DNA from: Lytechinus pictus | Taxonomy: Eukaryota | DNA length: 64,000 nucleotides | Assembly (NCBI RefSeq): GCF_037042905.1 | Contig: NC_087246.1 | Span: 45,632,001-45,696,000 of the forward strand | Direction of reading: 5' to 3' | In this document: in pieces, positions 11,200 through 64,000 of the stretch | Numbering within the stretch: position 1 is the stretch's first letter | How the letters are laid out: every line of letters begins with the position of its first letter | Translations under genes and position numbers: made by a program | Notes under the pieces: generated by a model | Told to the model about the DNA's origin: nothing | What the model saw: the letters and a program-made list of their open reading frames with translations, nothing else | The model's database searches: none

Positions 11200-12190
11200 G
11201 GGGGGCGCCGAATCAATGTCTGACACAGGGGCGCCGAATTAATGATCGACATATATAGGGGCGCCTAATCGATGTCCGACATAGGGGCGCCGAATTAATG
11301 TTTGACATATATAGGGGGCGCCGAATTGATATCCGACCTAGGGAGGCGCCGAATTGATGTTCGACATAAAAGGCGCCGAATTGATTTTCGACCTAGTGGC
11401 ACCGAATCGATGTCCGACATAGGGGCGCAGAAACGAAGTTCAACCTAGGGGAGGCGTTGAATTGATGTCCGACCCAGGGGCGCCGAATTGAAGTTAAACC
11501 TAGGGGAGGCGTTGAATTGGTGTCCGACCCAGGGGCGCCGAATTGAAGTTCGATATAGGGACGCAGGGTTGATCTTCAACCTAGGGGGGCGAATTGAAGT
11601 TCGATATACGGGACGCCGAATCTGTGCTCGACCTAGGGGGCGCCGAATTGATGTTCTACCTAGGGGCGCCGAATGAAGTTCAACATAGGGGCGCCGAATC
11701 GGTGTTCGACCTGGGGGGCAAATTTACGTTCTATCTAGGGGTGGGGGCGCCGAATTGATGTTGAACATAGGGGCGACAATTTGATGTTTCTCCTGGGGCG
11801 CCAAGTTCATCTTTGACCCTTCAGACGACAATTTGATCTATGTCCTGGGGCAGTAAATTCATGTTCACCCTAAGGAGGGGGGCGCCAAACTCATATTCGA
11901 CTTTTGGGGCGTCAAATTGATGTTTATCCTAGGGCGCCGAAGTCATAGTCAACCTAGGGAGGGAGGCGCCAAATTCATATTCGACCTTTCGGGAGCCAAT
12001 TTGATGTCTGACCTGGGGCGCCAAATTCAAGTTTCACATGCGGGCGGGGGGCGACAAATTAAACCTGACCGGAGGCGCTAGATTGACCTGAAACAAGGGG
12101 CGCCAAATTGACCTGAAGTAAAGGGGCACCAAAATGACCTTAATCTCGTGGGGGTGCCAAATCGATGTTTGACCGGGGGCGCCAAATTTC
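11200..12190. repeat. GC-rich degenerate minisatellite (~31-35 bp, ggggcgccgaattgatgttcgacctag) inside an older repeat
   Basis: Roughly 30 degenerate copies; shorter homologous array at ~18910-19570. Confidence 0.85.
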
Positions 12191-13277: not shown

Positions 13278-13317
<40 letters not shown>

Positions 13318-13320
<3 letters not shown>

Positions 13321-14137
13321 TGCGTCCCACAAAAAACGAAACCGAGATTAAGCGATGATTTATCATAACTTAATCACAAATACAATAGACAAATGACCTA
13401 CCAATTTAAAGCTTAGAATCCCCTCTTTCATCTGATATTACTTAGATTATTTCTCATTCACGCATGAGTGAGCAAAAACAATTTGAAGAAAGGATACCAA
13501 AAACTCATTTGGCGGGGTGTATCTGAATTTCAAAAAGAAAATCACATGCCTAAAAAGTTCAAAATCTGCTCTTTTATTTGATACCTTAATCACAAAAAAA
13601 GGTCAAGAAGTAAAAAAAGTTATGTTCCCTCGAAACAATGCTTGTATTTCCATAATTTCATTAAATAAACGTGTTTTCACCGGTTTCCCACAGAAGCTGT
13701 CGCATGGTTAACAAAATACTTAATTGCATGGCTGATCGTCAACAAATCGGAGTGTCAAGTGAGTTTGGACGCTTGCCTGTAGAACCTCTTAATTTTATGA
13801 AATTATTGAAATTCAAGCCTTTTTTCAAATAACCAGAACTTTGTTATTTCTTGACCATTTTCTGTAATTGAGGTATCAAATTAAAAAGCAGATATTGAAC
13901 TTTTTAAAAATGTGGTTTCTTTTTGAAACCCAGATACAGCCCGCCAAATGACTTTTCGGTATCCCCTCTTCAAATTGTTTTTGCTCACTCATGCCTGAAT
14001 GAGAAATAATATAAGTAATTGCAGATGAAAGAGGAGATTCTAAGCTTTACTATGATAGGTCATTTGTCTATTGTATTTGTGATTAAGTTGTGATAAATCA
14101 TCGATAAACCTCGGTTTCGTTTTTTGTGTGGGACGCC

Positions 14138-14140
<3 letters not shown>
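13318..14140. mobile_element. Tc1/mariner-type MITE with ~300-bp TIRs, flanked by (TA)n
   Basis: cagtgcgtcccacaaaaaacgaaaccgag ... ctcggtttcgttttttgtgtgggacgccctg; TA runs on both sides; absent from duplicate copy 2 (~20835). Confidence 0.9.
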
Positions 14141-14227
<87 letters not shown>

Positions 14228-18589: not shown

Positions 18590-19614
18590 ATCCACTTTAT
18601 TCACGAAATTCTGCAAGTAAAGGAATAACGTGAAAATGCAAGTTGAACGACTCTCAAATTTTGATACGATGGTAAAACACATGGCCGTACGCAGCAAAAT
18701 TTAGCAAAAGTATGCATGAAATCCAATAATTATTTTACTCGGTCGCCAAAAAGTTAACCCTCCTCATACGCGTATTCTGGGGGGCCCTCGGGACCCAACC
18801 CCCCGTGTAGGCGAAAAGGGGGGCGACAAAAAGAGGAAGAAAAGAGAGGGGAAAAGGGGGAGAAAAAAGGAGGGAAAGAAGAAGAGAAAAAGGGAGAAAG
18901 GAGAGGGAAGGGGGCGCCGAATGGACGTTCGACATATATAGGGGCGCCGACTTGATGTCCGACCTAGGGTGGCGCCGAATTGATTTTCGACTTTGTGGCA
19001 CCGAATTGATGTTCGACATAGAGGCGCTGAAACGAAGTTCAACCTAGGGGCGCCGAATTGAAGTTAAACCTAGGGGAGGGGTTGAATTGATGTTCTATCT
19101 AAGGGCACATAATTGCAGTTTAACATTTGGGCGCCGAATCTGTGTTGACCTAGGAGGGTAGGTCGAATTGATGTTCTATCTAGGGATGGGGTATGCCGAA
19201 TTGATGTTCAATATAGGGGCGACAATTTGATGTTTATCCTGGGGCGCCAAAGTCATGTTCAACCTAGGGAGGGGGGAGTGGCGCCAAATTCATCTTTGAC
19301 CCTTGAGACGACAATGTGATCTTTGTCCTGGGGTGGCAAATTCATGTTCAACCTAGGGAGGGGGCGCCAAACTCATATTTGACTTTTGGGGCGTGAATTT
19401 GATGTTTGTCCTAGGGCGCCGAATTCATAGTCAACCTAGGAAGGGAGGCGCCAAATTCATATTCGACCTTTCCGGCTCCAATTTGATGTCTGACCTGGGG
19501 CGCCAAATTCAAGTTTCACATGCGGGCGGGGGGGGGGGGGCAAATTGATGGCTGACCGGGGGCACCAAATTCCTGTTATACATGAGTTTGGAGCTCGCAT
19601 CAAATGCAAAATTA

Positions 19615-26964: not shown

Positions 26965-29900
26965 CTGAAGATAGTGAAATCAAATAGATGGGGATTTTTT
27001 TGGTTAGTATAGGAAGGATTAATGAGAGTAATACAGAAAAAAAAAGACCAGTTATACAAGGTGTTATACACTTCTACATGCATTAATCTTCAAAATATAC
27101 ACACACTTAAAATGTTGGGCAACATACTGTCCACTGAGTTGGGTAATGTATGTTGTAATATATATATATATATATATATATATTTTCTGGGCAATTATTA
27201 TCCAGTTGAGCAAATTCATTACCCTATTTGTTTTTATTACCCAATTTGGGCAGATTTTAACTAATAGTTGTGTGGACAGCATGTTGCCCCGGGTTACTTA
27301 AAAGTTGGGCATTTTTCATGGGTGTCTGGAAAACGAAGACCGAAGACCGAAGACCGGGGACTCATATCACACTCGTGTGAAAGCGTTTGTAGTTCACGCC
27401 CAGTGTGTACAAAGCAGTGCAAAGTGTGTACAAAACACGTGCGCGGGTTAGAATGGACTTTGGACCTTGCCCCGACACATGTTCTCCCATTGACAATGCA
27501 CGGGTCCCCGGTCTTCGATCTTCGTTTTCCAAACCCGTTGTTGGGTGTCTGGAAAACGAAGACCGAAGACCGGGGATCGCATTCGTTTAGCTAAGATACC
27601 ACTTATAAATGTCATTATGAAGGCCTCTATTATTCAGCTCAAATTCAAGAATATTCTGATCTAGAATACATTATATCACTAATTGGCTGATAATGAAGTC
27701 ATGTTAATTGCTTGTGTCAATAAATAGTATAGTTAGACCAGTTGAAGCGGGATAGGTCTCCCATTTTACACCACTATTCCACTGAGACAAGTAACAAACT
27801 CCAGTAATCAATCAGACCAGTTTCAAATTTCCAGTTAAAGGTTAACTCTAGACCAGTAATTTCAGACCAGTTTAATTCTTAACTGGTCCAGTAAAGTGAA
27901 CTCGACCAGTTAGACCAGTAAGCCGTTTTTCCATCTTCCAGAATTACATTCTGTGAACTGGTTTTTCCTTCTTAATTGGCTGACATTAATTTGCAATTTT
28001 ACTACCATTGACGTAACGCATGTCCCCGGTCTTCGGTCTTCGTTTTCCAAACCTGTTGTTGGGTGTCTGGAAAACGAAGACCGAAGACCGGGGATCGCGT
28101 CAATTCGTCTAGCTAAGATAGGCCTATAATATTCAGCACCAGTTTAAGAATATTCTGATCTTGGATACGTCATCAGCTATGATTGGCTGCGGATAAGTTA
28201 TGGTCATTTGTGTGAATTTCGTTATCAGCTAGGGCATGATATTAAGGATAACGTACATATTTCACCCACGGAATTCAGCCATTGCAATTCTGAAAACTGT
28301 CATAAAACTGAAAACTTGCATACAATACACCTCATACTGCGCAATCACGTACAAGCAGACTCAACTCATCTGGCGTTTGCAACTATTTTACTACCATTGA
28401 CATTACGCATGTCCCCGGTCTTCGGTCTTCGTTTTCCAAACCTGTTGTTGGGTGTCTGGAAAACGAAGACAGAAGACCGGGGATTGCGTATTCGTCTAGC
28501 TAAGATAGGCCTATAATATTCAGCTCCAATAATATTCTGATCTTGGATACGTCATCAGCTATGATTGGCTGCGGATAAGTTATGGTTATTTGTGTGAATA
28601 TCGTTATCAGCAAGGGCATGATATTAATGATAACGTACATATTTCACCCACGGAATTCAGCCATTGCAATTCTGAAAACTGTCATAAAACTGAAAACTTG
28701 CATACAATACACCTCATACTGCGCAATCACGTACAAGCAGACTCAACTCAACTGGCGTTTGCAACTATTTTACTACCATTGACATTACGCATGTCCCCGG
28801 TCTTCGGTCTTCGTTTTCCAAACCTGTTGTTGGGTGTCTGGAAAACGAAGACAGAAGACCGGGGATTGCGTATTCCTCTAGCTAAGATAGGCCTATAATA
28901 TTCAGCTCCAGTTTAAGAATATTCTGATCTTGCCCAGAAGGAAAAACCAGTTCCACTGGACCAGTTAGACCAGTACAATTTTTACTGGTAACTCTGGAAA
29001 TTGGAACATCGGTTTATTGGTCTAACTGGTCATACTGGTCCAGTTAAAATTTTACTGGTCCAGTTAAAAATTAAACTGGTCTTGAATTACTGGAATTTTA
29101 TACTGGTCTTGTTTCTGGTGGTTGTTGTTACTGGTCTCACTTGTCTCCAATTCAAGCTGGTCTTTACTGGTATTTTCTACTGGTCTGACTGGTCCTCGAA
29201 CTGATCGAACTGGTCATCGTATTGGTCTTAACTGGATCAATTTATTACATGCATGTGGTTTGTTATATACCATGGTCAGTGAAATGTGATAGAAAAGATG
29301 GTTAGTAAATTAATCTTTCAGCTGTTATTTTAAATGTGATATATAAAATTACACATTTTCATTGTGAATTAGTTCACACACTTATTTGGAAAGTTTTTAA
29401 ACAACAATGAGTGCCATTGCAAGGATATTCCATTCTAAATCCTGATTTTTTTTTTAAAATAGGAAATATGCAAATGAGGAAAGCCACGTGATCAGCATCA
29501 TCAGAATTACTGGTATTACTGGTCTTGACCAGTTCAATTTCAAACAATGAATTACTTTAGACCAGTTGACTATATCAGAGGAATACATCTTGCTTTGATC
29601 ATAATCATGATTAAAGGAAATAATTATTTTAATGATAATGTTAATACTTGATAATCATGATAATATTAATAACAATAATTACAATATCAATAACAATGAT
29701 AACAGCAATAAGAATGATAACAACAATGATCATAATAATCACGATAATTATAAGAAGAATGATGATAACAATAATAACGATAATAACTTTCTCTAAATTG
29801 CAAGATTCATTTTCCATAATTCGTCAAATGATCTGACTTGAAATAAAGTCATTATTTATTGGACCAGTAACACCAGTTTGATGAAAAACAATTTAACTGG

Positions 29901-32900
29901 TATTACTACTTTGCTTCAACTGGAATGCAATTGTTGGAACTGGTCTCCAGATGATTTTTAATGGTCCAGTTAAAAATCAACTGGTCCAGTAAACATATAC
30001 TGGAAACCAGTTAAAATCTACTGGAAACCATTTATTGGACCAGAAACACCAGTTTGATGAAAAACAATTTAACTGGTATTACTACTTTGCTTCAACTGGA
30101 ATGCAATTGTTGGAACTGGTCTCCAGATGATTTTTACTGGTCCAGTTAAACATATACTGGCCCAGTTAAAATATACTGGAAACCAGTAAAATTCTACTGG
30201 AAACCAGTAAAAATTCTTACTGGTCTTACTGGTTTTTCCTTCTGGGTGGATACGTCATCAGCTATGATTGGCTGCGGATAAGTTATGGTTATTTGTGTGA
30301 ATATCGTTATCAGCTAGGGCATGATATTAAGGATAACGTACATATTTCACCCACGGAATTCAGCCATTGCAAAACTGAAAACTTGCATACAATACACCTC
30401 ATACTGCGCAATCACGTACAAGCAGACTCAACTCAACTGGCGTTTGCAACTATTTTATACTACCATTGACATTACGCATGTCCCCGGTCTTCGGTCTTCG
30501 TTTTCCAAACCTGTTGTTGGGTGTCTGGAAAACGAAGACAGAAGACCGGGGATTGCGTATTCGTCTAGCTAAGATAGGCCTATAATATTCAGCACCAGTT
30601 CAAGAATATTCTGATCTTGGATACGCCATCAGCTATGATTGGCTGCGGATAAGTTATGGTTATTTGTGTGAATATCGTTATCAGCTAGGGCATGATATTA
30701 AGGATAACGTACATATTTCACCCACGGAATTCAGCCATTGCAATTCTGAAAACTGTCATAAAACTGAAAACTTGCATACAATACACCTCATACTGCGATA
30801 TCACGTACAAGCAGACTCAACTCAACTGGCGTTTGCAACCGACTATTTTACTTCCATTGACATTACGCATGTCCCCGGTCTTCGGTCTTCGTTTTCCAAA
30901 CCTGTTGTTGGGTGTCTGGAAAACGAAGACAGAAGACCGGGGATTGCGTATTCGTCTAGCTAAGATAGGCCTATAATATTCAGCTCCAAGAATATTCTGA
31001 TCTTGGATACGTCATCAGCTATGATTGGCTGCGGATAAGTTATGGTTATTTGTGTGAATATCGTTATCAGCAAGGGCATGATATTAATGATAACGTACAT
31101 ATTTCACCCACGGAATTCAGCCATTGCAATTCTGAAAACTGTCATAAAACTGAAAACTTGCATACAATACACCTCATACTGCGCAATCACGTACAAGCAG
31201 ACTCAACTCAACTGGCGTTTGCAACTATTTTATACTACCATTGACATTACGCATGTCCCCGGTCTTCGGTCTTCGTTTTCCAAACCTGTTGTTGGGTGTC
31301 TGGAAAACGAAGACAGAAGACCGGGGATTGCGTATTCGTCTAGCTAAGATAGGCCTATAATATTCAGCTCCAGTTTAAGAATATTCTGATCTTGGATACG
31401 TCATCAGCTATGATTGGCTGCGGAGAAGTTATGGTTATTTGTGTGAATATCGTTATCAGCTAGGGCATGATATTAAGGATAACGTACATATTTCACCCAC
31501 GGAATTCAGCCATTGCAAAACTGAAAACTTGCATACAATACACCTCATACTGCGCAATCACGTACAAGCAGACTCAACTCAACTGGCGTTTGCAACTATT
31601 TTATACTACCATTGACATTACGCATGTCCCCGGTCTTCGGTCTTCGTTTTCCAAACCTGTTGTTGGGTGTCTGGAAAACGAAGACAGAAGACCGGGGATT
31701 GCGTATTCGTCTAGCTAAGATAGGCCTATAATATTCAGCACCAGTTCAAGAATATTCTGATCTTGGATACGTCATCAGCTATGATTGGCTGCGGATAAGT
31801 TATGGTTATTTGTGTGAATATCGTTATCAGCTATAGGGCATGATATTAAGGATAACGTACATATTTCACCCACGGAATTCAGCCATTGCAATTCTGAAAA
31901 CTGTCATAAAACTGAAAACTTGCATACATATACACCTCATACTGCGCAATCACGTACAAGCAGACTCAACTCAACTGGCGTTTGCAACTATTTTACTTCC
32001 ATTGACATTACGCATGTCCCCGGTCTTCGGTCTTCGTTTTCCAAACCTGTTGTAGGGTGTCTGGAAAACGAAGACAGAAGACCGGGGATTGCGTATTCGT
32101 CTAGCTAAGATAGGCCTATAATATTCAGCTCCAGTTTAAGAATATTCTGATCTTGGATACGTCATCAGCTATGATTGGTTGCGGATAAGTTATGGTTATT
32201 TGTGTGAATATCGTTATCAGCAAGGGCATGATATTAAGGATAACGTACATATTTCACCCACGGAATTCAGCCATTGCAATTCTGAAAACTGTCATAAAAC
32301 TGAAAACTTGCATACAATACACCTCATACTGCGCAATCACGTACAAGCAGACTCAACTCAACTGGCGTTTGCAACTATTTTATACTACCATTGACATTAC
32401 GCATGTCCCCGGTCTTCGGTCTTCGTTTTCCAAACCTGTTGTTGGGTGTCTGGAAAACGAAGACAGAAGACCGGGGATTGCGTATTCGTCTAACTAAGAT
32501 AGGCCTATAATATTCAGCACCAGTTCAAGAATATTCTGATCTTGGATACGTCATCAGCTATGATTGGCTGCGGATAAGTAATGGTTATTTGTGTGAATAT
32601 CGTTATCAGCTAGGGCATGATATTAAGGATAACGTACATATTTCACCCACGGAATTCAGCCATTGCAATTCTGAAAACTGTCATAAAACTGAAAACTTGC
32701 ATACAATACACCTCATACTGCGCAATCACGTACAAGCAGACTCAACTCAACTGGCGTTTGCAACTAGCTATTTTACTACCATTGACATTACGCATGTCCC
32801 CGGTCTTCGGTCTTCGTTTTCCAAACCTGTTGTTGGGTGTCTGGAAAACGAAGACAGAAGACCGGGGATTTCATTCGTCAAGCTAATTACCACATATAGC

Positions 32901-34333
32901 GTGCTATGGACACGTTTCCGTGCAATTGTACTTCGTTTTCTTCATGCTGGCTGATAAACAGACCTTAAAACAACCGATATACGTGGATACAATATTCCAT
33001 GAAATTGTCATATCGTTTTTAAAGAAAACAAATTTTCAAACTGAAAAAATGCATGCAATTAATAGATGCTTACATAGAATCAGGGGCGTAGCAGCGTTCG
33101 GTGGCCAGGGGAGGGGGGGGGGACGAGAGCCAGAAAATTCCCGGTCATTATCATCAGTGGCGTAATTAAGAAAAACGGGAAAAAGAAAAAAGGGAGGGAG
33201 AAAGAAAGAAAGAAATGGAACTGGGGAAGGAAATGGGAAAAGGAAAGGAGGAAAAGGAAAGGGAAAATTGAAAAGAAAACGAAGAAAAAAACTTTTTTTT
33301 TGAATGGAAAAGAAAGGAAAGCGGGAAAATATACGAAAGAAGAACATTTGAGAAAGAACACATCATTCCGAAATAGGCCTATGTAATGCAATAGCACGGT
33401 GGGAAATAATTTAAAAGATAACAAAATGGTATGAAGAGCGGGAAAAGAAGGTAGAACGTAATTAATCAAAAGCTAAATTGGAAAAAAATACAAGGGAAAA
33501 AAGGACAAGAAAAAAATATTAACACGACCGGGCTGCCGATGATTGAAAAGAGCGGGAAGAAAGATGGTCTGCATACATTGTGTTATAAGCTTGCTAGACT
33601 TTATGCAAATAAGCTACCGGGCCTTTGTCCCAGACCCCACGCAGTATGGGCTCTTCAGCATTTATAACCTTTAAATGGCTATATACCTATACCCCCGCGC
33701 CCCCCGTTCAACAATGTTCAATCAATGGCATACAGGCGGGGGGGGGTGTTCCACACCCAAGAGGGAAAAAAAGAAAATAGGAGACAAAGTATAATGAAAT
33801 GAATGGACAATGAAATGTGTTATTTGCTGAATATAATGGAAAATATATCACATAATTAGAATTTAATTTCAATAGGCAATTTTTTTCCAGCTCGCTTTGC
33901 ACGCTAGCGACTTTTTTTCCACGTTGGTATGCTTTGCCCTATAAATATTTGGTTCATTACGCAACTGGGTTGAATAAATGTGTTGTGTAAAAGCTATAGT
34001 CTATGTAGAATGCGATTTGATTAAAATAGCGGCAATCTGCGAGGTTTAAATGGCTTTGATATCAAGAAGTTTTCAGGGGGCTCCGCCCCGGACCCCAACC
34101 GCACATCGATCACTGCGTATGGAAGTGTTGGGCCATGGGCCCAAAAAGTTGTACAAACAAAAACACAAAAAAAGCAGAGGAAAAGTGTAGGATATGATTT
34201 TATTTACTGAATATAATGTCAAAAAATAGCTCAAAGTTAGATTCTCATGAAAAGGTGATTTTTTTATCGCTCGCTTCGCTCGGGACTTATATAAAACAGC
34301 TTTCTTTAGCACATGTGGTATACTCCACCCCTG

Positions 34334-34364
<31 letters not shown>

Positions 34365-37300
34365 CTTCACGTTACAGCCGCAAAGAATCCTGTTCACAGT
34401 GCGCGTACAGACGACAAAAAAGGAATCCAAAGAGAGAAGAGTGAAATATCATTCTCTGGACATCATGTCAAAATCTATCACAAAATTTGATTTTTGTATT
34501 AAAAAGGTCAAAATTTTTGCTCGCTCGCACTTTTTTAAATAAAAGATAAATTCTGTCCGATGCACAATATCTGGCCTTCTCAAAATAGTGTCGGCTCATT
34601 ACGCCTGTTTATACCATATAATGTGACCAGGAAATTACGCCGCTGCATATCATGGTGTGAAGAGCGGTCTGTCCCCTGGATAGGAACATCGGCAGTAATT
34701 GGGCGATATCTTGAAGTTCACTAATTTGTGTCCCCTTATGATTGCGGCTAGTTGCGTGAAATCAAAATAGGCTATTATATACACGTCATACCCACACACC
34801 AGCCGAGTCTTTCTTACCGTTCTTGATTTTCAACCTCGGTATCCCGGTTGTGTTCCAGTGGCGTAGCTAGGATTTTTTTCCTGGGGGGCACTGGGGGTCC
34901 TTGCTTTGAGTCAGGGGGGCACCATTTTTATCCGGTGTGTACTTGTCACAAGGGCCCGAAATTATCTTCACCTATATTTTTCCCGATCAGTCACTTCTTC
35001 GTTATATTCTTATAAAACAGCATAAACATGAAATAATCTCATAAGCATTATAAAAAGTGCGAGCGCGAAGCGCGAGCGATTTTTTTTTTATTTGTTACTT
35101 TCATGTAATATTCTGGGCAATGTTATGTGTGATCCCGATCAAGATTCGTATGTAACTAGATGGTTACTGCGAACGCCAAGCGCGAGCAGAAATTTTTATT
35201 AACTGTTCTAGCATTATCGAAAAGGGACCTGTTAAGTGCACTTATATAGGTACCCACGAAGATGGTATATATTTCAATAATGCAATTTTTTTGACATTCC
35301 GACCTAAAAGAATGGTAATTCTAAGCACTTTTTGTATCAATAAATGGGATAGGTATGTAACGAAACAATGGATGCGAGCGCGAAGCGCGAGAGGAAAAAA
35401 AATGAGATTTTAGACCTAAAAGCGGGACACTATTCATATTTTGTAAATCATAAATAGGATATAATTAATTGGGTATCATTAATTATGCTATCGTAAAGCG
35501 CGAGCAGACAATTATTTATATTCTGATGTGAAACTGGATAATTCAAGTAGATTTTAAATAAAGAACATGCATGCTATCGCGCATGTTTTAGATTTAGACC
35601 TAGAATCTGGGCATTCTGAATATATTTCTTTTAATGGAACATTTTAATGGAACATTATGGAATACATGTAGACAATAGGAACTTGGCAAATCAAACAATG
35701 TGACCACGCAGCGTGAGCTTTAAAAAAAAATGCTGATATGTAGACAATAAAACGGACATTTTGCAGAGCACTTAAATTTGTAAATGAAAAAAATATTGAA
35801 AGCTCGATGTCCGAGCTAATTATGTTTTGTATAATGACTTCAAAACTTGCTCCATATCAGCCTATTGAGCAAGATATGAATCTCATCGAACAGTCAATTC
35901 TGGCGCGAAGCGCAAGCAAATATTTTTTATAGTAACATGAAAGAATTGTTTCTTTTTTGGCAAGTCTTCCCCTCACATTATTTCATTCATTCGTCTCCCT
36001 CCTCTAATTTTCCTCTTCTTTTTTCTTCTGTCTTTCTTCTTCTTTTTCTTTTCTTCTTTCTCCCTTTTTTTTTTGCTCTACCAATTTTTTTCCAGGCGGG
36101 GCACCTGATGGGGGCACACCAAATCTCAGGGAGGGGGGGGGGGCTCCCAGCCCCCCCCCCCCCCCCCCCCGTAGCTACGCCACTAGCTGTTGTGTTCTTA
36201 ATTTCTTTCTTTTCCCCTCTTGTTTTTTCTGTTTTCTATTCCGATTTCATGTTAGCATTTTCGCATCCCGTTTATTTTGGCCTCTCTTCCTTCCCTTTCC
36301 CGCCTAAAATTTCCGTTCCACTTTGCCATCTCTTTATTTCTAACCCCTTTCTCACTTGTTTATTAGTAGGCCCTATTTCAGGATGATTAGATTTGTTTGA
36401 TCATTCCAATTATTGGCCCTTTTCCTTTCTCCTTTCTTCCTTCTCTTTCTCATTGTTTGTCTCGCCCGCAAGAGGTGAAGGCGAGACTAAGAGATCCAAA
36501 TGTCGTCCGCCCGTCGATTCCCAAAGAGGGTAAGCCGATTCTGCGGTGCAAGATAGACCAAAAGCCAATTCTGCATCGGCTTTTGGTTCTGAACCAAAAG
36601 CCGATGCACGTGTAAACAGGGTAATTTTCTTCCAAACGCGTACTGAATTGTTGCTCTCGAAATGTACGCGTGGGAACGTCTCGGGTTTAACCGCAAAGTA
36701 GTAGCGACACACTTGTGTTTCATGTGCGCCGACCGTATAGAAAACATCGCATACCGGCAACAGCATTCTACAAAAGCACGCTTGCCACCTGTCTTATAGG
36801 TCGATGACATTGCTTTCTATTACAATTAGGTTTATTTTATACGGAGCCTTTAAAGGGATGGGCGGGCTGAAAGCATGTATAGCTTAATGAATAGAGTAAA
36901 ATTCCTCGAGCAAAATATCGAAAATTTCATCAAAATCGGATAACAAAGTTATTGAATTTTAAAATTTAGCAATATTTTGTGAATACAGTCGTCATGAATA
37001 TTCATTAGGTTGGCTGATGATGTCACATCTCCACTTGTTCTTTTGTATTTTATTATATGAAATTAGGTTTATTCAAATGTTTTCATCCAAGAACAAAAAA
37101 GTAGAAAAATTGGATTGGCAACTGATTTAGTGCATTAAAAATTCATTGCTGCAACTTGTTTCATTATAAGGGAGACATATATATTATTAGCACAAATATG
37201 AAATAATGTAAAAATTATGATTATATATAATAACATAGGGAAACGGAGAGTGGAGATGTGACATCATCAGCCCACCTAATGAATATTCACGACGACTGTT

Positions 37301-40300
37301 TTAACAATATATTGCTAAACTTTAAACTTCAATAACTGTTTACTTGTTATCCGATTGATGAAATGTATTAAGATATAAATATTTTCAGCCAGGACCATCC
37401 CTTTTACATGTTTTAATTGCCATCGACTTGGCGAGAAACTTAATTATGCCATGTCGACATAATGTCGACATGGCGAGATACGTTATCTCGCCATGTCGAC
37501 ATATATGACCTTTTATAAGTCGACTTGGCGAGATATCGTATCTCGTCATCTGGATGTGAACGATATTCACACAAATAACTATAACTTTTCGGCAGCAAAT
37601 CATAGCTGATGACGTATCCAAGATCAGAATATTCTTGAACTGGTGCTGAATATTATAGGCCTATCTTAGCTAGACGAATTGACGCGATCCCCGGTCTTCT
37701 GTCTTCGTTTTCCAGACACCCAACAACAGGTTTGGAAAACGAAGACCGAAGACCGGGGACATGCGTTATGTCAATGGTAGTAAAATAGTTGCAAACGCCA
37801 GTTGAATTGAGTCTGCCTGTACGTGATTGCGCAGTATGAGGTGTATTGTATGCAAGTTTTCAGTTTTATGACAGTTTTTGGAATTGCAATGGCTGAATTC
37901 CATGGGTGAAATATGTACGTTATCCTTAATATCATGCCCTAGCTGATAACGATATTCACACAAATAACCATAACTTATCCGCAGCCAATCATAGCTGATG
38001 ACGTATCCAAGATCAGAATATTCTTAAACTGGAGCTGAATATTATAGGCCTATCTTAGCTAGACGAATACGCAATCCCCGGTCTTCTGTCTTCGTTTTCC
38101 AGACACCCAACAACAGGTTTGGAAAACGAAGACCGGGGACATGCGTAATGTCAATGGTAGTAAAATAGTTGCAAACGCCAGTTGAGTTGAGTCTGCTTGT
38201 ACGTGATTGCGCAGTATGTGGTGTATTGTATGCAAGTTTTCAGTTTTATGACAGTTTTCAGAATTGCAATGGCTGAATTCCGTGGGTGAAATATGTACAT
38301 TATAATTGTCTATCCTTATTAATCATGCCCTAGCTGATAACGATATTCACACAAATAACCATAACTTATCCGCAGCCAATCATATAGCTGATGACGTATC
38401 CAAGATCAGAATATTCTTAAACTGGAGCTGAATATTATAGGCCTATCTTAGCTAGACGAATACGCAATCCCCGGTCTTCTGTCTTCGTTTTCCAGACACC
38501 CAACAACAGGTTTGGAAAACGAAGACCGGGGACATGCGTAATGTCAATGGTAGTAAAATAGTTGCAAACGCCAGTTGAGTTGAGTCTGCCTGTACGTGAT
38601 TGCGCAGTATGAGGTGTATTGTATGCAAGTTTTCAGTTTTATGACAGTTTTCGGAATTGCAATGGCTGAATTCCGTGGGTGAAATATGTACATTGTAATT
38701 AGTATCTATCCTTATTAATCATGCCCTAGCTAATAACGATATTCACACAAATAACCATAACTTATCCGCAGCCAATCATAGCTGATGACGTATCCAAGAT
38801 CAGAATATTCTTAAACTGGAGCTGAATATTATAGGCCTATCTTAGCTAGACGAATACGCAATCCCCGGTCTTCTGTCTTCGTTTTCCAGACACCCAACAA
38901 CAGGTTTGGAAAACGAAGACCGGGGACATGCGTAATGTCAATGGTAGTAAAATAGTTGCAAACGCCAGTTGAGTTGAGTCTGCTTGTACGTGATTGCGCA
39001 GTATGTGGTGTATTGTATGCAAGTTTTCAGTTTTATGACAGTTTTCAGAATTGCAATGGCTGAATTCCGTGGGTGAAATATGTACATTATAATTGTCTAT
39101 CCTTATTAATCATGCCCTAGCTGATAACGATATTCACACAAATAACCATAACTTATCCGCAGCCAATCATATAGCTGATGACGTATCCAAGATCAGAATA
39201 TTCTTAAACTGGAGCTGAATATTATAGGCCTATCTTAGCTAGACGAATACGCAATCCCCGGTCTTCTGTCTTCGTTTTCCAGACACCCAACAACAGGTTT
39301 GGAAAACGAAGACCGGGGACATGCGTAATGTCAATGGTAGTAAAATAGTTGCAAACGCCAGTTGAGTTGAGTCTGCCTGTACGTGATTGCGCAGTATGAG
39401 GTGTATTGTATGCAAGTTTTCAGTTTTATGACAGTTTTCGGAATTGCAATGGCTGAATTCCGTGGGTGAAATATGTACATTGTAATTAGTATCTATCCTT
39501 ATTAATCATGCCCTAGCTAATAACGATATTCACACAAATAACCATAACTTATCCGCAGCCAATCATAGCTGATGACGTATCCAAGATCAGAATATTGTTA
39601 AACTGGAGCTGAATATTATAGGCCTATCTTAGCTAGACGAATACGCAATCCCCGGTCTTCTGTCTTCGTTTTCCAGACACCCAACAACAGGTTTGGAAAA
39701 CGAAGACCGAAGACCGGGGACATGCGTAATGTCAATGGTAGTAAAATAGTTGCAAACGCCAGTTGAGTTGAGTCTGCTTGTACGTGATTGCGCAGTATGG
39801 GGTGTATTGTATGCAAGTTTTCAGTTTTATGACAGTTTTCAGAATTGCAATGGCTGAATTCCGTGGGTGAAATATGTACATTATAATTGTCTAATCCTTA
39901 TTAATCATGCCCTAGCTGATAACGATATTCACACAAATAACCATAACTTATCCGCAGCCAATCATAGCTGATGACGTATCCAAGATCAGAATATTCTTGA
40001 ACTGGTGCTGAATATTATAGGCCTATCTTAGTTAGACGAATACGCAATCCCCGGTCTTCTGTCTTCGTTTTCCAGACACCCAACAACAGGTTTGGAAAAC
40101 GAAGACCGAAGACCGGGGACATGCGTAATGTCAATGGTAGTAAAATAGTTGCAAACGCCAGTTGAGTTGAGTCTGCTTGTACGTGATTGCGCAGCTAGTA
40201 TGGGGTGTATTGTATGCAAGTTTTCAGTTTTAATGACAGTTTTCGGAATTGCAATGGCTGAATTCCGTGTGTGAAATATGTACATTATAATTGTCTATCC

Positions 40301-43300
40301 TTATTAATCATGCCCTAGCTGATAACGATATTCACACAAATAACCATAACTTATCCGCAGCCAATCATAGCTGATGACGTATCCAAGATCAGAATATTCT
40401 TAAGCTGGAGCTGAATATTATAGGCCTATCTTAGCTAGACGAATACGCAATCCCCGGTCTTCTGTCTTCGTTTTCCAGACACCAAACAACAGGTTTGGAA
40501 AACGAAGACCGAAGACCGGGGACATGCGTTATGTCAATGGTAGTATAAAATAGTTGGAAACGCCAGTTGAGTTGAGTCTGCTTGTACGTGATTGCGCAAT
40601 ATGAGGTGTATTGTATGCAAGTTTTCAGTTTTATAACAGTTTTCAGAATTCCAATGGCTGAATTCCATGGGTGAAATATGTACGCTATCTTTGATATCAT
40701 GCCCTAGCTGATAACGATATTCACACAAATAACCATAACTTATCCGCAGCCAATCATAGCTGATGACGTATCCAAGATCAGAATATTCTTGAACTGGTGC
40801 TGAATATTATAGGCCTATCTTAGCTAGACGAATTGACGCGATCCCCGGTCTTCTGTCTTCGTTTTCCAGACACCCAACAACAGGTTTGGAAAACGAAGAC
40901 CGAAGACCGGGGACATGCGTAATGTCAATGGTAGTAAAATTGCAAATTAATGTCAGCCAATTAAGAAGGAAAAACCAGTTCACAGAATGTAATTCTGGAA
41001 AATGGAAAAACGGCATTCTGGTCTAACTGGTCGAGTTCACTTTACTGGACCAGTTAAGAATTAAACTGGTCTGAAATTACTGGTCTAGAGTTAACCTTTA
41101 ACTGGACATTTGAAACTGGTCTGATTGATTACTGGAGTTTGTTACTTGTCTCAGTGGAATAGTGGTGTAAACTGGGAGACCTATCCCGCTTCAACTGGTC
41201 TAACTATACTAAGTATTGACACAAGCAATTAACATGACTTCATTATCAGCCAATTAATGACATTAATGTATTCTAGATCAGAATATTCTTGAATTTGAGC
41301 TGAATAATAGAGGCCTTCATAATGACATTTATAAGTGGTATCTTAGCTAAACGAATGCGATCCCCGGTCTTCGGTCTTCGTTTTCCAGACACCCAACAAC
41401 GGGTTTGGAAAACGAAGATCGAAGACCGGGGACCCGTGCATTGTCAATGGGAGAACATGTGTCGGGGCAAGGTCCAAAGTCCATTCTAACCCGCGCACGT
41501 GTTTTGTACACACTTTGCACTGCTTTGTACACACTTCGGGCGTGAACTACAAACGCTTTCACACGAGTGTACTATGAGTCCCCGGTCTTCGGTCTTCGGT
41601 CTTCGTTTTCCAGACACCCATTTTTCATCCAACTATTCAAGAAGTCTTTGTCACAAGTATAGTTGAACCGGAGCACTAGCAGCTCCGCCCTAGATTAGCA
41701 GCGATTAATTGCAAATTTATTGTTCGCCCAGAATCTGCTGTTTTTGGTTCACCAATTTTTGACATCTGCTCCTTGACGGGTATTGAACAATATTCTCTTC
41801 TTGAAGTGCCGGTAGGTCGCTGATGGAAAATTTCCTTATTATGTTGCATAGGCATGAATGGTATCATTTATGTTGGCTAAAAAAGTTCGGACCGATCATA
41901 ATTTATGGACCTTTCAGCCAGTTAGGATTTTAACCCCCCTCCCCCCCCCCGGGCTCCCTTAAGAAAAGCGAAGGTTCACACTATAACCATTCCTCATTTC
42001 TGTTGACATAGGGCGCGCAAGCAGGATGGTGGCGATCATAGTACATCACTGCTCATACATGTCATAGCCACTGGGTCAAACTAACTTGTCAACCCCCCCC
42101 CCCCCTCTTAGCAGAAAGCTAGACCCACCACTGATTATTTGGCAAAAGTATAACTCTGTGACTAATGCCACGAGCTACATTTTAATGTGTGAAATGGCTT
42201 CATGGTCTTTATTAAGACATGAATGACTGTGACCATTCAGGTATACACTTTGAATTCAACTTGCATTTATCAACCATACGGTCGTTTTCTTTAAGATGAT
42301 TGTTCGCACTCAATGAAATATACATCTATAATGTGCAGTAGATCAGTCCCAAAATTACCGTTTCACCTTCATTAATACGTGGTTAAATAATTGCTTCTCA
42401 AAAGTATGTTGCCATGAGTAATATTACCTTCCCCAGCAAATGGTGATGATTGCTAGGACGATGGCCAGGGCTACGATGATGGCAATGATGATGATGAGAA
42501 CGTATTGGAGCTCTAACAGAACTTCACCTTCCTCGACGGCACCCCTGGTCACCTCCAAGACCGTCACATTGACTTCTCTTGCAATGGTGTCGATGTTAGC
42601 AGAGACTGCTTCATACAGCGCTCCTTGGCTCAAGTAACCTAGAATGTGATCAAAGCAAAGGTAAACATGATTATTTTGTTCTTATTCTACCACGTAAATG
42701 AAACATGAATCTTGATATAAAGTATAAAAGTCTTTCGTTAACTTATTTACATTCAAATGGTGGATTATTGAACGTACAAATCCAGGTTATTTTTTCAAGA
42801 GGCCTTCAGAACCTTAGTTCGTGAGTATACTCTTAAAAGGAATAAAGTAACCAATAGATTGGTGAATATGTGCCCGACCCATAGATAAAAACGGTCAATA
42901 TCAAGCAGATTATAACTTATCAATTGCTTGATATTTACCATTTTTGTCGGTCGGACACATATTAACCAAAGTATTGTTTATTTCCACTAACCCTAAAAGT
43001 GCGTATGTTGCTATTCTTCATTAGTATTAACCCTAAGCATTTACCAAATAGAAGAATACTGTTAACATACCCTCCGAAGAAGAGTCTGTCTGCCTTTTGT
43101 CTCTTGGTATCACATGCAATTGGGCATCTCTTCTTTTTCGACCAAGTGCCCAGTTCTCCATGCAAAGATCACTTGGTGTTGGGGGCGTTATGAGCAGCAT
43201 GACCGCGAAGGCTTCTATTGGGTCGTATTGAGGGCGCTCTTCGGGGTAGCCATCTGCTACGGACACGTGGCTACTGTCGACATAATTCAATGTCAGGTCA

Positions 43301-60288: not shown

Positions 60289-63200
60289 GGCGCCGAATGT
60301 ACCAATATTATATAGAACAATTATTTGTTATATAATCATTATTTATTAAATAATAACTATTATTTATATATAATTTACATTTTATTTGTAAATAACTACT
60401 ATTATATAAAATATCATTTCTAATTATTTATATATAATTCCAAGTAATACTTCATTATTTGTAATTAATAATAGTTCGACATTCCATTATTTATAAATAA
60501 TGATTATTTGTTTTTCATTTAATATTTATAAATAATGATTATTTGTTTTTCATTATTTATAAATAATGATTATTTGTTTTTCATTATTTACAAATAATGA
60601 TTATTTGTTTTTCATTATTTATAAATAATGATTATTTGTTTTTCATTATTTACAAATAATGATTATTTGTTTTTCATTATTTATAAATAATGATTATTTG
60701 TTTTTCATTATTTATAAATAATGATTATTTGTTTTTCATTATTTACAAATAATGATTATTTGTTTTTCATTATTTATAAATAATGATTATTTGTTTTTCA
60801 TTATTTATAAATAATTATTATTTGTTTTTCATTATTTACAAATAATGATTATTTGTTTTTCATTATTTATAAATAATGATTATTTGTTTTTCATTATTTA
60901 TAAATAATTTGTTGAGTTTTCCATTATTTATAAATAATGATTATTTGTTAAATAATGAAAACGTCTACTTCATTATTTATAAATAATTTTTTCGAGTGCA
61001 CCTTTATTCTCATTATTTATAAATAATCATTATTTAATGTTCGAGTTTTCCATTATTTATAAATAAAGATTATTTGTTAAATAATGAAATATCTACTTCA
61101 TTATTTATAAATAATAATTTTGTTTCAATATCCCATTATTTATAAATAATCATTATTTATAAACAATTTTTACAGTTTGCCATTATATACAAATAATCAT
61201 TATTTATATACAAATAACCATTATTTATTAAATAATGCCATTATTTATTAAATAATGCCATTATTTATTAAATAATGGAAAACTCGCTATAACATGCAAA
61301 TGTGGGACCGCCCATGATATGAATATTCATGATGCGATTTCCTTTTTCGTGATTTTTCTTCACAAATTTTTGTCCATTTCCTCTTCATAATGACATTTCT
61401 TGAAGCAATTTTCTAGGGATATGGTCTGATTGTAATATTCTTCATTTTCTATATAACTTCGTCTTCGTAGAAATATCAAAAAGTGTAATTTTATACGATT
61501 TTTCCTACAGTTCACATTCCCCATAGGCGCGCGTGTACGGTAGGGACAACCGGTGAATCGACGGAGTGCTCTTCATCGAAATACTACGTTGGTTGGTCCC
61601 CGGAAGTGGCGGGCGGAATTTAGCCCGAATCCTCGATGGAAGTCGATCAAGTGCATATGAGCTGAGAGAGTGAAATATCAGTGTACTTAATTGTACAGGC
61701 CCTTCTACTTTATTTCTTGTTGCTTTTTTTGTTAAGTTAATTTTTCCTGGTGTAGAGATAAGTTTCAGTTCTAATAATGCACTTCAAATACATTTTGGAG
61801 TGTTTGAGGCGCTTGGGGCGATTTCACCCTGGCCCCAAAATGCTCGCAACGACAATACGGGGGCATGATGACCCCTAAATTTTTAAAAACTTATTTTTCT
61901 ATTGAAAATTATCACAAAATTCACCAAAAGTGTGCACGAAAGCCTTCGTATTTCACTTTTAAAACTCCAAAAAGTGCCCAAATGACAAGCTTGGTCGCTT
62001 CGCTGTGTCGCTTTCAACTTGAGAACGTTTACGCGTCTGCTTCCCCCCCCCCCCCCTCCTCCGAAAGAAATTCTGTATACGGCCATGCTGTAAAGAGCCT
62101 GGCACATTGATTTATGTATACTTCATTTTCATTATTTTTATCTCATTATCATCATGGCCTTACGCAGAATTTTTTCCGGGGGGGGGGGTGGGGGGAGCAG
62201 GACGCGCGTAAACTTTCTCATAAAAATCTTGAAAAAGCGAAGCGACCAAGCTTGTCATTTGAGCTTGGTCGCGTCGCTGTCTCGCTTTCAAGATTTTTTT
62301 GAGAAAGTTTACGCGCGTCATGCTCCGGCCCCGGCCCCCCTGGAAAAAAATTCTGCGTAAGGCCATGTTGATAATGAGATAAAAATAATGAAAATGAAAG
62401 TATACATAAATCAATGTGCCAGGCTCTTTAGAGCATGGCCGTATACAGAATTTCTTTCGGAGGAGGGGGGGGGGGAAGCAGACGCGTAAACGTTCTCAAG
62501 TTGAAAGCGACACAGCGAAGCGACCAAGCTTGTCATTTGGGCACTTTTTGGAGTTTTAAAAGTGAAATACGAAGGCTTTCATGCACACTTTTGGTGAATT
62601 TTGTGATAATTTTCAATAGAAAAATAAGTTTTTAAAAATTTAGGGGTCATCATGCCCCCGTATTGTCGTTGCGAGCATTTTGGGGCCAGGGTGAAATCGC
62701 CCCAAACGCCTCAGACACTCCAAAATGTATTTGAAGTGCATTATTAGAACTGAAACTTATCTCTACACCAGGAAAAATTAACTTAACAAAAAAAGCAACA
62801 AGAAATAAAGTAGAAGGGCCTGTACAATTAAGTACACTGATATTTCACTCTCTCAGCTCATATGCACTTGATCGACTTCCATCGAGGATTCGGGCTAAAT
62901 TCCGCCCGCCACTTCCGGGGACCAACCAACGTAGTATTTCGATGAAGAGCACTCCGTCGATTCACCGGTTGTCCCTACCGTACACGCGCGCCTATGGGGA
63001 TTGTGAACTGTAGGAAAAATCGTATAAAATTACACTTTTTGATATTTCTACGAAGACGAAGTTATATAGAAAATGAAGAATATTACAATCAGACCATATC
63101 CCTAGAAAATTGCTTCAAGAAATGTCATTATGAAGAGGAAATGGACAAAAATTTGTGAAGAAAAATCACGAAAAAGGAAATTGCATCATGAATATTCATA

Positions 63201-64000
63201 TCATGGGCGGTCCCACATTTGCATGTTATAGCGAGTTTTCCATTATTTAATAAATAATGGCATTATTTAATAAATAATGGCATTATTTAATAAATAATGG
63301 CATTATTTGATAAATAATGGTTATTTGTATATAAATAATGATTATTTGTATATAATGGCAAACTGTAAAAATTGTTTATAAATAATGATTATTTATAAAT
63401 AATGGGATATTGAAACAAAATTATTATTTATAAATAATGAAGTAGATATTTCATTATTTAACAAATAATCTTTATTTATAAATAATGGAAAACTCGAACA
63501 TCAAATAATGATTATTTATAAATAATGAGAATAAAGGTGCACTCGAAAAAATTATTTATAAATAATGAAGTAGACGTTTTCATTATTTAACAAATAATTA
63601 TTATTTATAAATAATGGAAAACTCAACAAATTATTTATAAATAATGAAAAACAAATAATCATTATTTATAAATAATGAAAAACGAATAATCATTATTTAT
63701 AAATAATGAAAAACAAATAATCATTATTTATAAATAATGAAAAACAAATAATCATTATTTGTAAATAATGAAAAACAAATAATCATTATTTATAAATAAT
63801 GAAAAACAAATAATCATTATTTATAAATAATGAAAAACAAATAATCATTATTTATAAATAATGAAAAACAAATAATCATTATTTGTAAATAATGAAAAAC
63901 AAATAATCATTATTTATAAATAATGAAAAACAAATAATCATTATTTGTAAATAATGAAAAACAAATAATCATTATTTATAAATAATGAAAAACAAATAAT
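60289..64000. mobile_element. Giant near-perfect palindrome / Foldback-like element centred at ~62260; right end outside the window
   Basis: 62101-62110 pairs with 62411-62420, and the symmetry continues to 64000 with only scattered mismatches; outer domain of 31-bp tandem repeats; left boundary approximate. Confidence 0.8.
60485..60910. repeat. 31-bp AT-rich tandem repeat containing the palindrome cattatttataaataatg (mirrored at ~63630-64000)
   Basis: Period 31 (60551, 60582, ...); decays inward into degenerate cattattta motifs. Confidence 0.92.

Follow-up and report, generated by a model that had tools for sequence, protein, structure and literature searches.

In a 64,000-nucleotide stretch of the genome of the sea urchin Lytechinus pictus (RefSeq assembly GCF_037042905.1, contig NC_087246.1, positions 45,632,001 to 45,696,000 of the forward strand; this whole stretch is hereafter "the window"), we identified a 14.3-kb repeat element that is probably a non-autonomous, Foldback-type Mutator-like element (MULE). 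We read its two arms as subterminal satellite arrays, its boundaries as set only by the terminus of the outermost repeat unit (unit A), and its likely driver as an 891-amino-acid (891-aa) MULE/SWIM transposase. The arms consist of three kinds of unit (A, 223–225 bp; B, 518–519 bp; C, 371–403 bp) that family copies carry in the common order A-B-C(n)-core-C(n)'-B'-A', with a 4.9-kb core lying between the left and right C arrays (Table 1). None of the open reading frames (ORFs) of the 4.9-kb core or of the array has a Pfam match.

Array units re-create the end of the element at head-to-head junctions

The 21-nt terminus of the element, GGGTGTCTGGAAAACGAAGAC, recurs through both arms, with 12 copies on the + strand (27320...32835) and 11 on the - strand (37721...41619), one of the copies having 1 mismatch, against a chance expectation of 0. 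This search confirmed the count of 12 left and 11 right inward-facing termini given by the original prediction, which had been made from the letters of the window. Every internal copy is preceded by a junction in which a degenerate outward end (...gttttccaaacc) is followed by a 7-bp spacer, TGTTGTT, and then by the inward terminus, for totals of 11 junctions in the left arm and 10 in the right. The outward end reads GGTT in place of GGGTGTC, and the A, B and C units have one spacer in common, the exceptions being CGTTGTT at the A|B junction and TGTTGTA in one copy; four right-arm junctions are without one heptamer on the degenerate side. At a unit boundary, the ~26-nt end motif (TGGAAAACGAAGAC plus GAAGACC heptamers) stands as a head-to-head pair. 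Folded as single-stranded DNA, the junction at 28413-28482 reaches -29.5 kcal/mol (z = -8.7 versus shuffles), which bears out the predicted ~70-bp hairpins as near-palindromes, and the description of a degenerate right end joined head-to-head to a near-perfect left end through tgttgtt holds at all window junctions, with few spacer variants.

The units had further been described as shaped like transposable elements of the miniature inverted-repeat kind (MITEs), and this stands in part: they do possess ~26-33-nt imperfect inverted ends, but they have no target-site duplications (TSDs) of their own and their outward end is without the terminal GGGTGTC. Genome-wide, GTT stands before nearly all exact-match internal termini, and insertion-specific TSDs were not found between these monomers. 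The constancy of the spacer argues that the junction is copied within the unit and is not made anew by insertion, and on this ground we rejected an origin of MITE concatemers by serial insertion. The degenerate outward tip would be the remnant left after trimming of an unstable, perfect palindrome centre, and a remote origin of the junction by double insertion and then unequal exchange is possible (PMC5932611).

A young family with the traits of MULEs and of Foldback elements

At least 761 perfect termini are present in the genome, and 65 of them are outer ends (46 with three GAAGACC heptamers and 19 with two) that pair into about 35 elements, from 1.4 kb to about 40 kb long, and into two further intervals of 63 and 75 kb. 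TSDs measure 9-10 bp in all eight elements for which both flanks were readable (9 bp in six, 10 bp in two, with one 9-bp pair differing at one base), and so lie within the 9-11 bp by which MULEs are recognized. As in Foldback elements, the terminal inverted repeats (TIRs) are tandem-repeat structures that vary between arms and copies, an arm having between 3 and 10 C units in the three copies compared, and many copies are non-coding, some of them with little beyond the arms (structures A-B-B'-A' and A-B-C-A'). Identity between copies is 99-100% for A units, about 98% for B units and 98-100% for the first 266 bp of the core, a segment found once per element, on one side only, in ~25 copies; this degree of likeness indicates that the family is very young. 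Both core flanks align to another copy at 93-96%.

Only the outermost terminus is found at element boundaries

It had been proposed that any left-right pair of termini could be a transposase substrate, such that internal pairs would give rise to a Russian-doll series of derivatives. To survey the ends, we combined three complementary pattern searches for exact B/C-type or two-heptamer termini that have no preceding junction. Junction-less exact termini numbered 24, comprising 19 A-type ends, 3 point-mutated junctions, 1 recombinant chimera and 1 80-bp fragment that adjoins unrelated repeats. All 65 scored outer ends proved to be A-type, though internal termini outnumber outer ones about 10:1, and the proposal that any pair is a substrate finds no support in a sample where 0/65 outer ends are of B/C type. 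By the same exact patterns, no element in the genome survey starts or ends at an internal or degenerate terminus, and no degenerate end abuts flanking DNA, the six ends not followed by T all being junction variants with C there. A genome-wide search among exact-match termini for solo A, B or C units with their own 9-bp TSDs, as the original prediction had suggested, returned none, and with it none of the dispersed monomers that mark a MITE-derived satellite; units that never occur solo, in a family whose copies start only at the A terminus, are essentially what that prediction had named as its refutation. The outermost A-unit terminus is the sole terminus found at element boundaries, within a sample of 65 outer ends in which internal-end use below roughly 5% would go undetected. 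For cleavage, something supplied only by the A unit, or else a non-palindromic context, would be needed.

Arrays grow by block duplication, and short copies probably arise by recombination between arms

When 37 C units taken from three copies were compared pairwise by distance, near-identical blocks emerged. Within the window's right arm, unit 6 pairs with unit 8 and unit 7 with unit 9, while in its left arm units 4, 7 and 10 are nearly identical and unit 6 is close to unit 9, giving a three-unit periodicity; a second copy pairs units 4 and 9, 5 and 10, and 7 and 11, and a third has four neighbouring near-identical units. The two arms of one copy mirror each other in their outermost C units, which are also common to different copies, and arms can be strongly asymmetric (3 versus 8 C units in one copy). 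Near-identical blocks of this kind point to tandem block duplication, by unequal exchange or slippage, mostly in the inner array, and they show that the arrays expand and contract through tandem block duplication and unequal exchange. The earlier view of the arms as tandem MITE concatemers can thus be kept for the tandem units that each re-create the element end, but not for concatenated MITE insertions, given the constant spacer and the block duplications.

Chimeric units, in which what comes after a perfect terminus is the interior of the right end of a unit, occur 10 times in the genome, and one is present in each of the six elements of 1.4-5.3 kb. Structures read in short copies include A-B-C, junction, inverted A and A-B, junction, inverted B-A, and another short copy reads A-B-C-C and ends in a perfect terminus with its TSD kept; the short derivatives still begin on the left with A, and both of their ends are perfect termini. 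Because the junction is nearly palindromic, junctions of the left arm and of the right arm are also direct repeats of each other, and crossing-over or template switching in repair within the shared 26 nt would delete the intervening DNA and leave chimeras with the breakpoints seen here. Two reciprocal types of chimera exist, which argues for independent events. We infer that the short derivatives are arm-to-arm homologous recombinants formed through the palindromic junctions, and these chimeric copies do not represent the alternative end use implied by Russian-doll derivatives. An origin of the short copies by excision plus end joining was also considered and rejected, since at the central junctions of these copies a perfect terminus is still joined to an interior to which it does not belong.

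A probable cognate transposase lies between the most distant A ends

Searched in six frames, the 812 Mb contain 17 matches to the MULE domain, and two of these lie within the two largest intervals bounded by inverted A ends, at G000:C4:3049977-3124902 and C5:27290437-27353361. These two are the only full-length gene copies in the 812 Mb, one being an intact 891-aa ORF in the 75-kb interval on C4 and the other a frameshifted copy in the 63-kb interval on C5, with 98.6% identity between them over 3.3 kb. The gene lies 47 kb (C4) and 40 kb (C5) from the upstream end and 25 kb and 20 kb, respectively, from the downstream end. The 891-aa ORF (L070:619-3291) has a PF10551 match above the cut-off and, conserved in 21 homologues, the residues D298/D367/E500, C388-x2-H391 and a SWIM finger (C688/C690/C699/H701), in keeping with the DDE transposase, MULE domain, C/DxxH motif and frequent SWIM finger of MULEs. 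In the C4 interval, a rare variant of the degenerate end occurs on either side, exactly 2193 bp inward of the interval's end. Close to their upstream ends, both giant intervals have a chimeric unit, in matching orientation. The DNA around the transposase gene (L070, L071, L076-L081) contains no GAAGACC heptamers or clear terminus copies and has only unrelated small repeats in common with the window; in this genome, the putative sharing of termini by non-autonomous and coding copies is drawn from co-location between A-type ends only. Judged from sequence, the cognate transposase is probably the 891-aa MULE/SWIM protein, which is newly identified here.

The gene is followed on its 3' side by tandem repeats of about 1.9 kb (G000:C4:3101848-3107787; C5:27304885-27308937; L079-L081), and each ~1.9-kb unit holds the decayed C-terminal ~100 codons of the gene together with a small MITE that is also present at window positions 13280-14190.

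Homologous elements reiterate the same end motif

Homologues of the 891-aa protein number 44 and come from sea cucumber, coral and ENA or Logan assemblies. We compared the loci around four of them, three from ENA assemblies (L082, L083 and L084) and one from the sea cucumber Apostichopus japonicus (L085). The homologue termini have the form GGGTGT..AAAACGAAGAC plus heptamers, and the distance from the homologous genes to near-identical termini is 1.7-8.6 kb, which suggests that the end motif travels with the transposase clade. The closest matches, at 49% protein identity, are L082, a 6.8-kb element with a 9-bp TSD, a terminus that differs at 2/21 positions and is followed by six heptamers, and 94-bp subterminal units in each of which the end motif forms a 50-nt palindrome, and L083, where a related terminus is present at one end together with 23 copies of a 29-bp unit that has the motif in direct order. 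L084 (48% identity) spans about 14.9 kb between two related ends, and in each arm about nine units of 173 bp carry the motif as a head-to-head pair; no matching TSD was found for it, so that the ends may not simply belong together. L085 (40% identity) is a 14.9-kb element with a 10-bp TSD, related termini and four units of ~410 bp per arm, each with two outward-facing motifs.

The end motif is thus present in the subterminal units of all four homologous loci and is head-to-head in two of them (the 94- and 173-bp units), with the L. pictus family as the extreme case in that its inward copy is perfect to the last base. As far as these sequences tell, the reiterated end motif in subterminal tandem units is a conserved design, despite unrelated interiors and unit sizes.

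Related elements also have a protein-kinase gene (Pkinase/PK_Tyr_Ser-Thr) upstream of the transposase (L084:4104-5099, L085:6826-9967, L083:1-352), placed within the TIRs in L084 and L085. Between these two loci the kinases show 40-46% identity, a divergence about equal to that of the transposases, and one protein in the database, P0040, carries the annotation of a kinase-MULE fusion. It would be unusual for a transposon to bear a conserved kinase.

Function of the arrays and competing explanations

We propose that the reiterated motifs are putative transposase-binding sites that would aid the capture and pairing of both ends and would not themselves be cleaved; such a role has been put forward for Foldback and subterminal-repeat transposons elsewhere (see below), and the array is plausibly a set of such sites. 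An alternative that we regard as unlikely is that the arrays are a neutral by-product, in which unequal exchange multiplied a subterminal segment that by chance held a palindromic motif pair and now hitch-hikes without contributing to transposition. The fast, sloppy turnover that is evident from duplicated blocks and from arms as unequal as 3 versus 8 C units would fit this, as would the existence of short copies with one to three units per arm, but all four homologous elements, with unrelated interiors and units of 29-410 bp, reiterate the end motif, and a chance origin of the same arrangement four or five times is hard to accept. It is very improbable, though consistent with the excess of roughly 700 internal termini over about 70 real ends and one intact transposase gene, that the internal motifs would act as a sponge, titrating enzyme away from productive ends and thereby limiting the element itself or out-competing other copies; arrays also occur in the transposase-bearing elements of other species, where pure self-inhibition would be selected against.

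The remaining alternatives concern how the arrays arose. That the arms are concatemers of independent MITEs, with any inward-outward pair live and inner pairs yielding nested, smaller mobile derivatives that leave satellite behind, would account for units bounded by inverted end copies, for inward copies that are perfect to the last base and for the existence of 1.4-5.3-kb derivatives. We nevertheless judge it highly unlikely: 0/65 outer ends start at a B or C terminus despite the ~10:1 internal excess, degenerate ends never meet flanking DNA, the spacer is constant where a variable TSD would be expected, the chimeric junctions of the short derivatives are not expected from simple excision plus end joining, and no two short derivatives are alike in structure so as to show copying by transposition. 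There is likewise only a slim chance that the unit goes back to a small element that was excised and circularised, with rolling-circle copying of its joined ends and their subsequent re-integration. The junction does resemble abutted ends with a short spacer, but the outward end is truncated, the same spacer serves A, B and C units, and near-identical blocks with periods of 2, 3 and 5 units are better explained by repeated local duplication.

Several observations weigh against our preferred reading of a Foldback-type MULE bounded by A ends alone and probably driven by the 891-aa protein. The internal inward termini equal two-heptamer A ends over 34 nt, yet are apparently uncut. Exact patterns may miss old, diverged solo units, and about a quarter of unpaired degenerate ends would escape them. 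The array units are only 1-3% diverged, and their perfect conservation may reflect recency and not selection. Finally, the link between the sea-urchin transposase and the A ends is drawn from co-location at 20-47 kb and from orthologous elements.

Features of the element and other repeats of the window

Table 1. Parts of the L. pictus element and of its surroundings, in window positions (position 1 is the first letter of the window).
Feature	Position	Strand	Remarks
Whole non-autonomous, probably Foldback-type MULE (14.3 kb)	27320..41619	.	perfect inverted termini, TSD, ~35-copy family
TSD ATTTTTCAT, left copy	27311..27319	.	same 9-mer at 41620-41628
TSD ATTTTTCAT, right copy	41620..41628	.	matches left 9-mer
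Unit A left, outer terminus, three GAAGACC heptamers	27320..27542	+	99-100% identity to other copies' A units
Unit B left, 518 bp, C-like, holding an old fragment of the 'ccagtt' TIR-element family	27543..28060	+	
Left array, nine C units (371-391 bp), the third interrupted	28061..32834	+	
Example of junction near-palindrome, ~70 nt: degenerate outward end, TGTTGTT, perfect inward end	28413..28482	+	fold
Nested unrelated 1314-bp element with perfect 19-bp TIRs, in third C unit	28933..30246	.	C sequence restarts at 30247
Conserved non-coding core, from innermost left terminus to innermost right-arm terminus	32835..37721	+	
Truncated C unit, the final ~160 bp of the core	37560-37721		
Right array, eight C units (387-403 bp), two-unit higher-order repeat	37722..40875	-	
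Unit B right, 519 bp	40876..41394	-	98% identity to left B
Unit A right, outer terminus	41395..41619	-	

The conserved core holds a ~550-bp palindromic MITE (window 36850-37400) that other element copies have too. The element nested in the third C unit has TIRs of sequence CCCAGAAGGAAAAACCAGT, many internal ACTGGTC/CCAGTT motifs and an apparent 2-bp (TG) duplication, and unit B holds an older fragment of its family. Elsewhere in the window, two inverted arrays of a 31-bp AT-rich repeat (60485-60949 and 63589-64000) are separated by about 2.6 kb that includes repeats of 129 bp and 17-20 bp, forming a second foldback-like structure that runs off the window end. Arrays of a 26-28-bp unit (GGGGCGCCGAATTGATGTTCGACCTA) and 83-84-bp relatives occupy 11202-11717, 11865-12140 and 18939-19515; these arrays form two sites about 7 kb apart, each adjoining purine-rich tracts.

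Significance

Foldback transposons have been known since 1980. To our knowledge, the origin and function of their arms and the enzyme that mobilises them are poorly understood, and most families are without an identified transposase. In the family described here, a probable and intact transposase comes together with dozens of fresh copies whose arrays vary, with natural deletion derivatives and with signs from other species that the reiterated end motif is conserved. Palindromic junctions would make these elements recombine with themselves, which bears on the seeding of satellites and on rearrangements. A broader proposal, which we put forward tentatively and consider somewhat doubtful, is that an echinoderm-centred MULE clade kept its terminus and motif-repeating array through about 50-60% transposase divergence, with the arrays acting as required cis-acting landing pads through which the enzyme would mobilise very large elements. 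If true, the 75-kb copy with its intact gene and the 63-kb copy with its broken one would be such very large elements, and the sea urchin, whose genome combines a single intact transposase gene with ~35 non-coding copies that are near-identical, would be the first system in which Foldback movement becomes tractable. Foldback elements with repeat-built TIRs are already known; what deserves following up here is that the architecture is conserved, that there is a candidate transposase and that giant copies may exist.

Comparison with known systems

Sea urchins have reportedly yielded foldback transposons before, in the TU elements of Strongylocentrotus purpuratus (Liebermann et al. 1983, cited in PMC4079207), which are said to possess long modular inverted arms with tandem repeats and, from the 1983-85 papers, outer domains of ~15-bp repeats; their likeness to the present element is one of description only. 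For the proposed binding-site role, the subterminal repeats of En/Spm and the THAP sites of Galileo come closest. The subterminal regions of En/Spm (CACTA) elements hold many TNPA-binding motifs in both orientations that are thought to join the ends, and Galileo TIRs are said to have multiple THAP sites. Unlike the present MULE, these two belong to other superfamilies with 3-bp and 7-bp TSDs, respectively, and their motifs are not copies of the cleavage terminus. The circles and dimers of bacterial insertion sequences (IS30, IS911, IS256) have intact ends that abut in a junction, which is a hyper-reactive transposition intermediate. The likeness lies in two ends that face each other across a few bp, whereas here the tip of the outward end is lost and no product of junction use was seen.

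MITE-derived satellites and tandem dimers of transposable elements (Xstir, miDNA4, DTC84) likewise have a monomer resembling a small TIR element (PMC5932611, PMC12628747), but differ in that here there are no dispersed solo monomers and no variable TSD, and arrays are found only inside the arms of a larger element. Surveys of MULE diversity report no echinoderm clade of such a type, and arthropod element lengths of 1.4-10 kb (PMC6446971, PMC13359780).

The closest architectural match is with Foldback elements, which possess composite TIRs of tandem repeats and 9-bp TSDs and have been assigned to Mutator (PMC3169594, PMC4079207). Drosophila FB, Tetris of D. virilis and Tm1 of root-knot nematodes resemble the L. 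pictus family in their long tandem-repeat TIRs with copy numbers that vary between arms and copies, their 8-10-bp (mostly 9-bp) TSDs, their mostly non-coding copies of which some are almost only arms, and a transposase of MULE type where one is known (PMC3169594, PMC4079207). Compared by description, their units are 10-220 bp versus ~390 bp here. Unlike in FB, Tetris and Tm1, each unit of the present family holds a ~70-nt near-palindrome with a base-perfect copy of the extreme terminus, and the arms extend to 4-5.5 kb, and probably to tens of kb in the coding copies.

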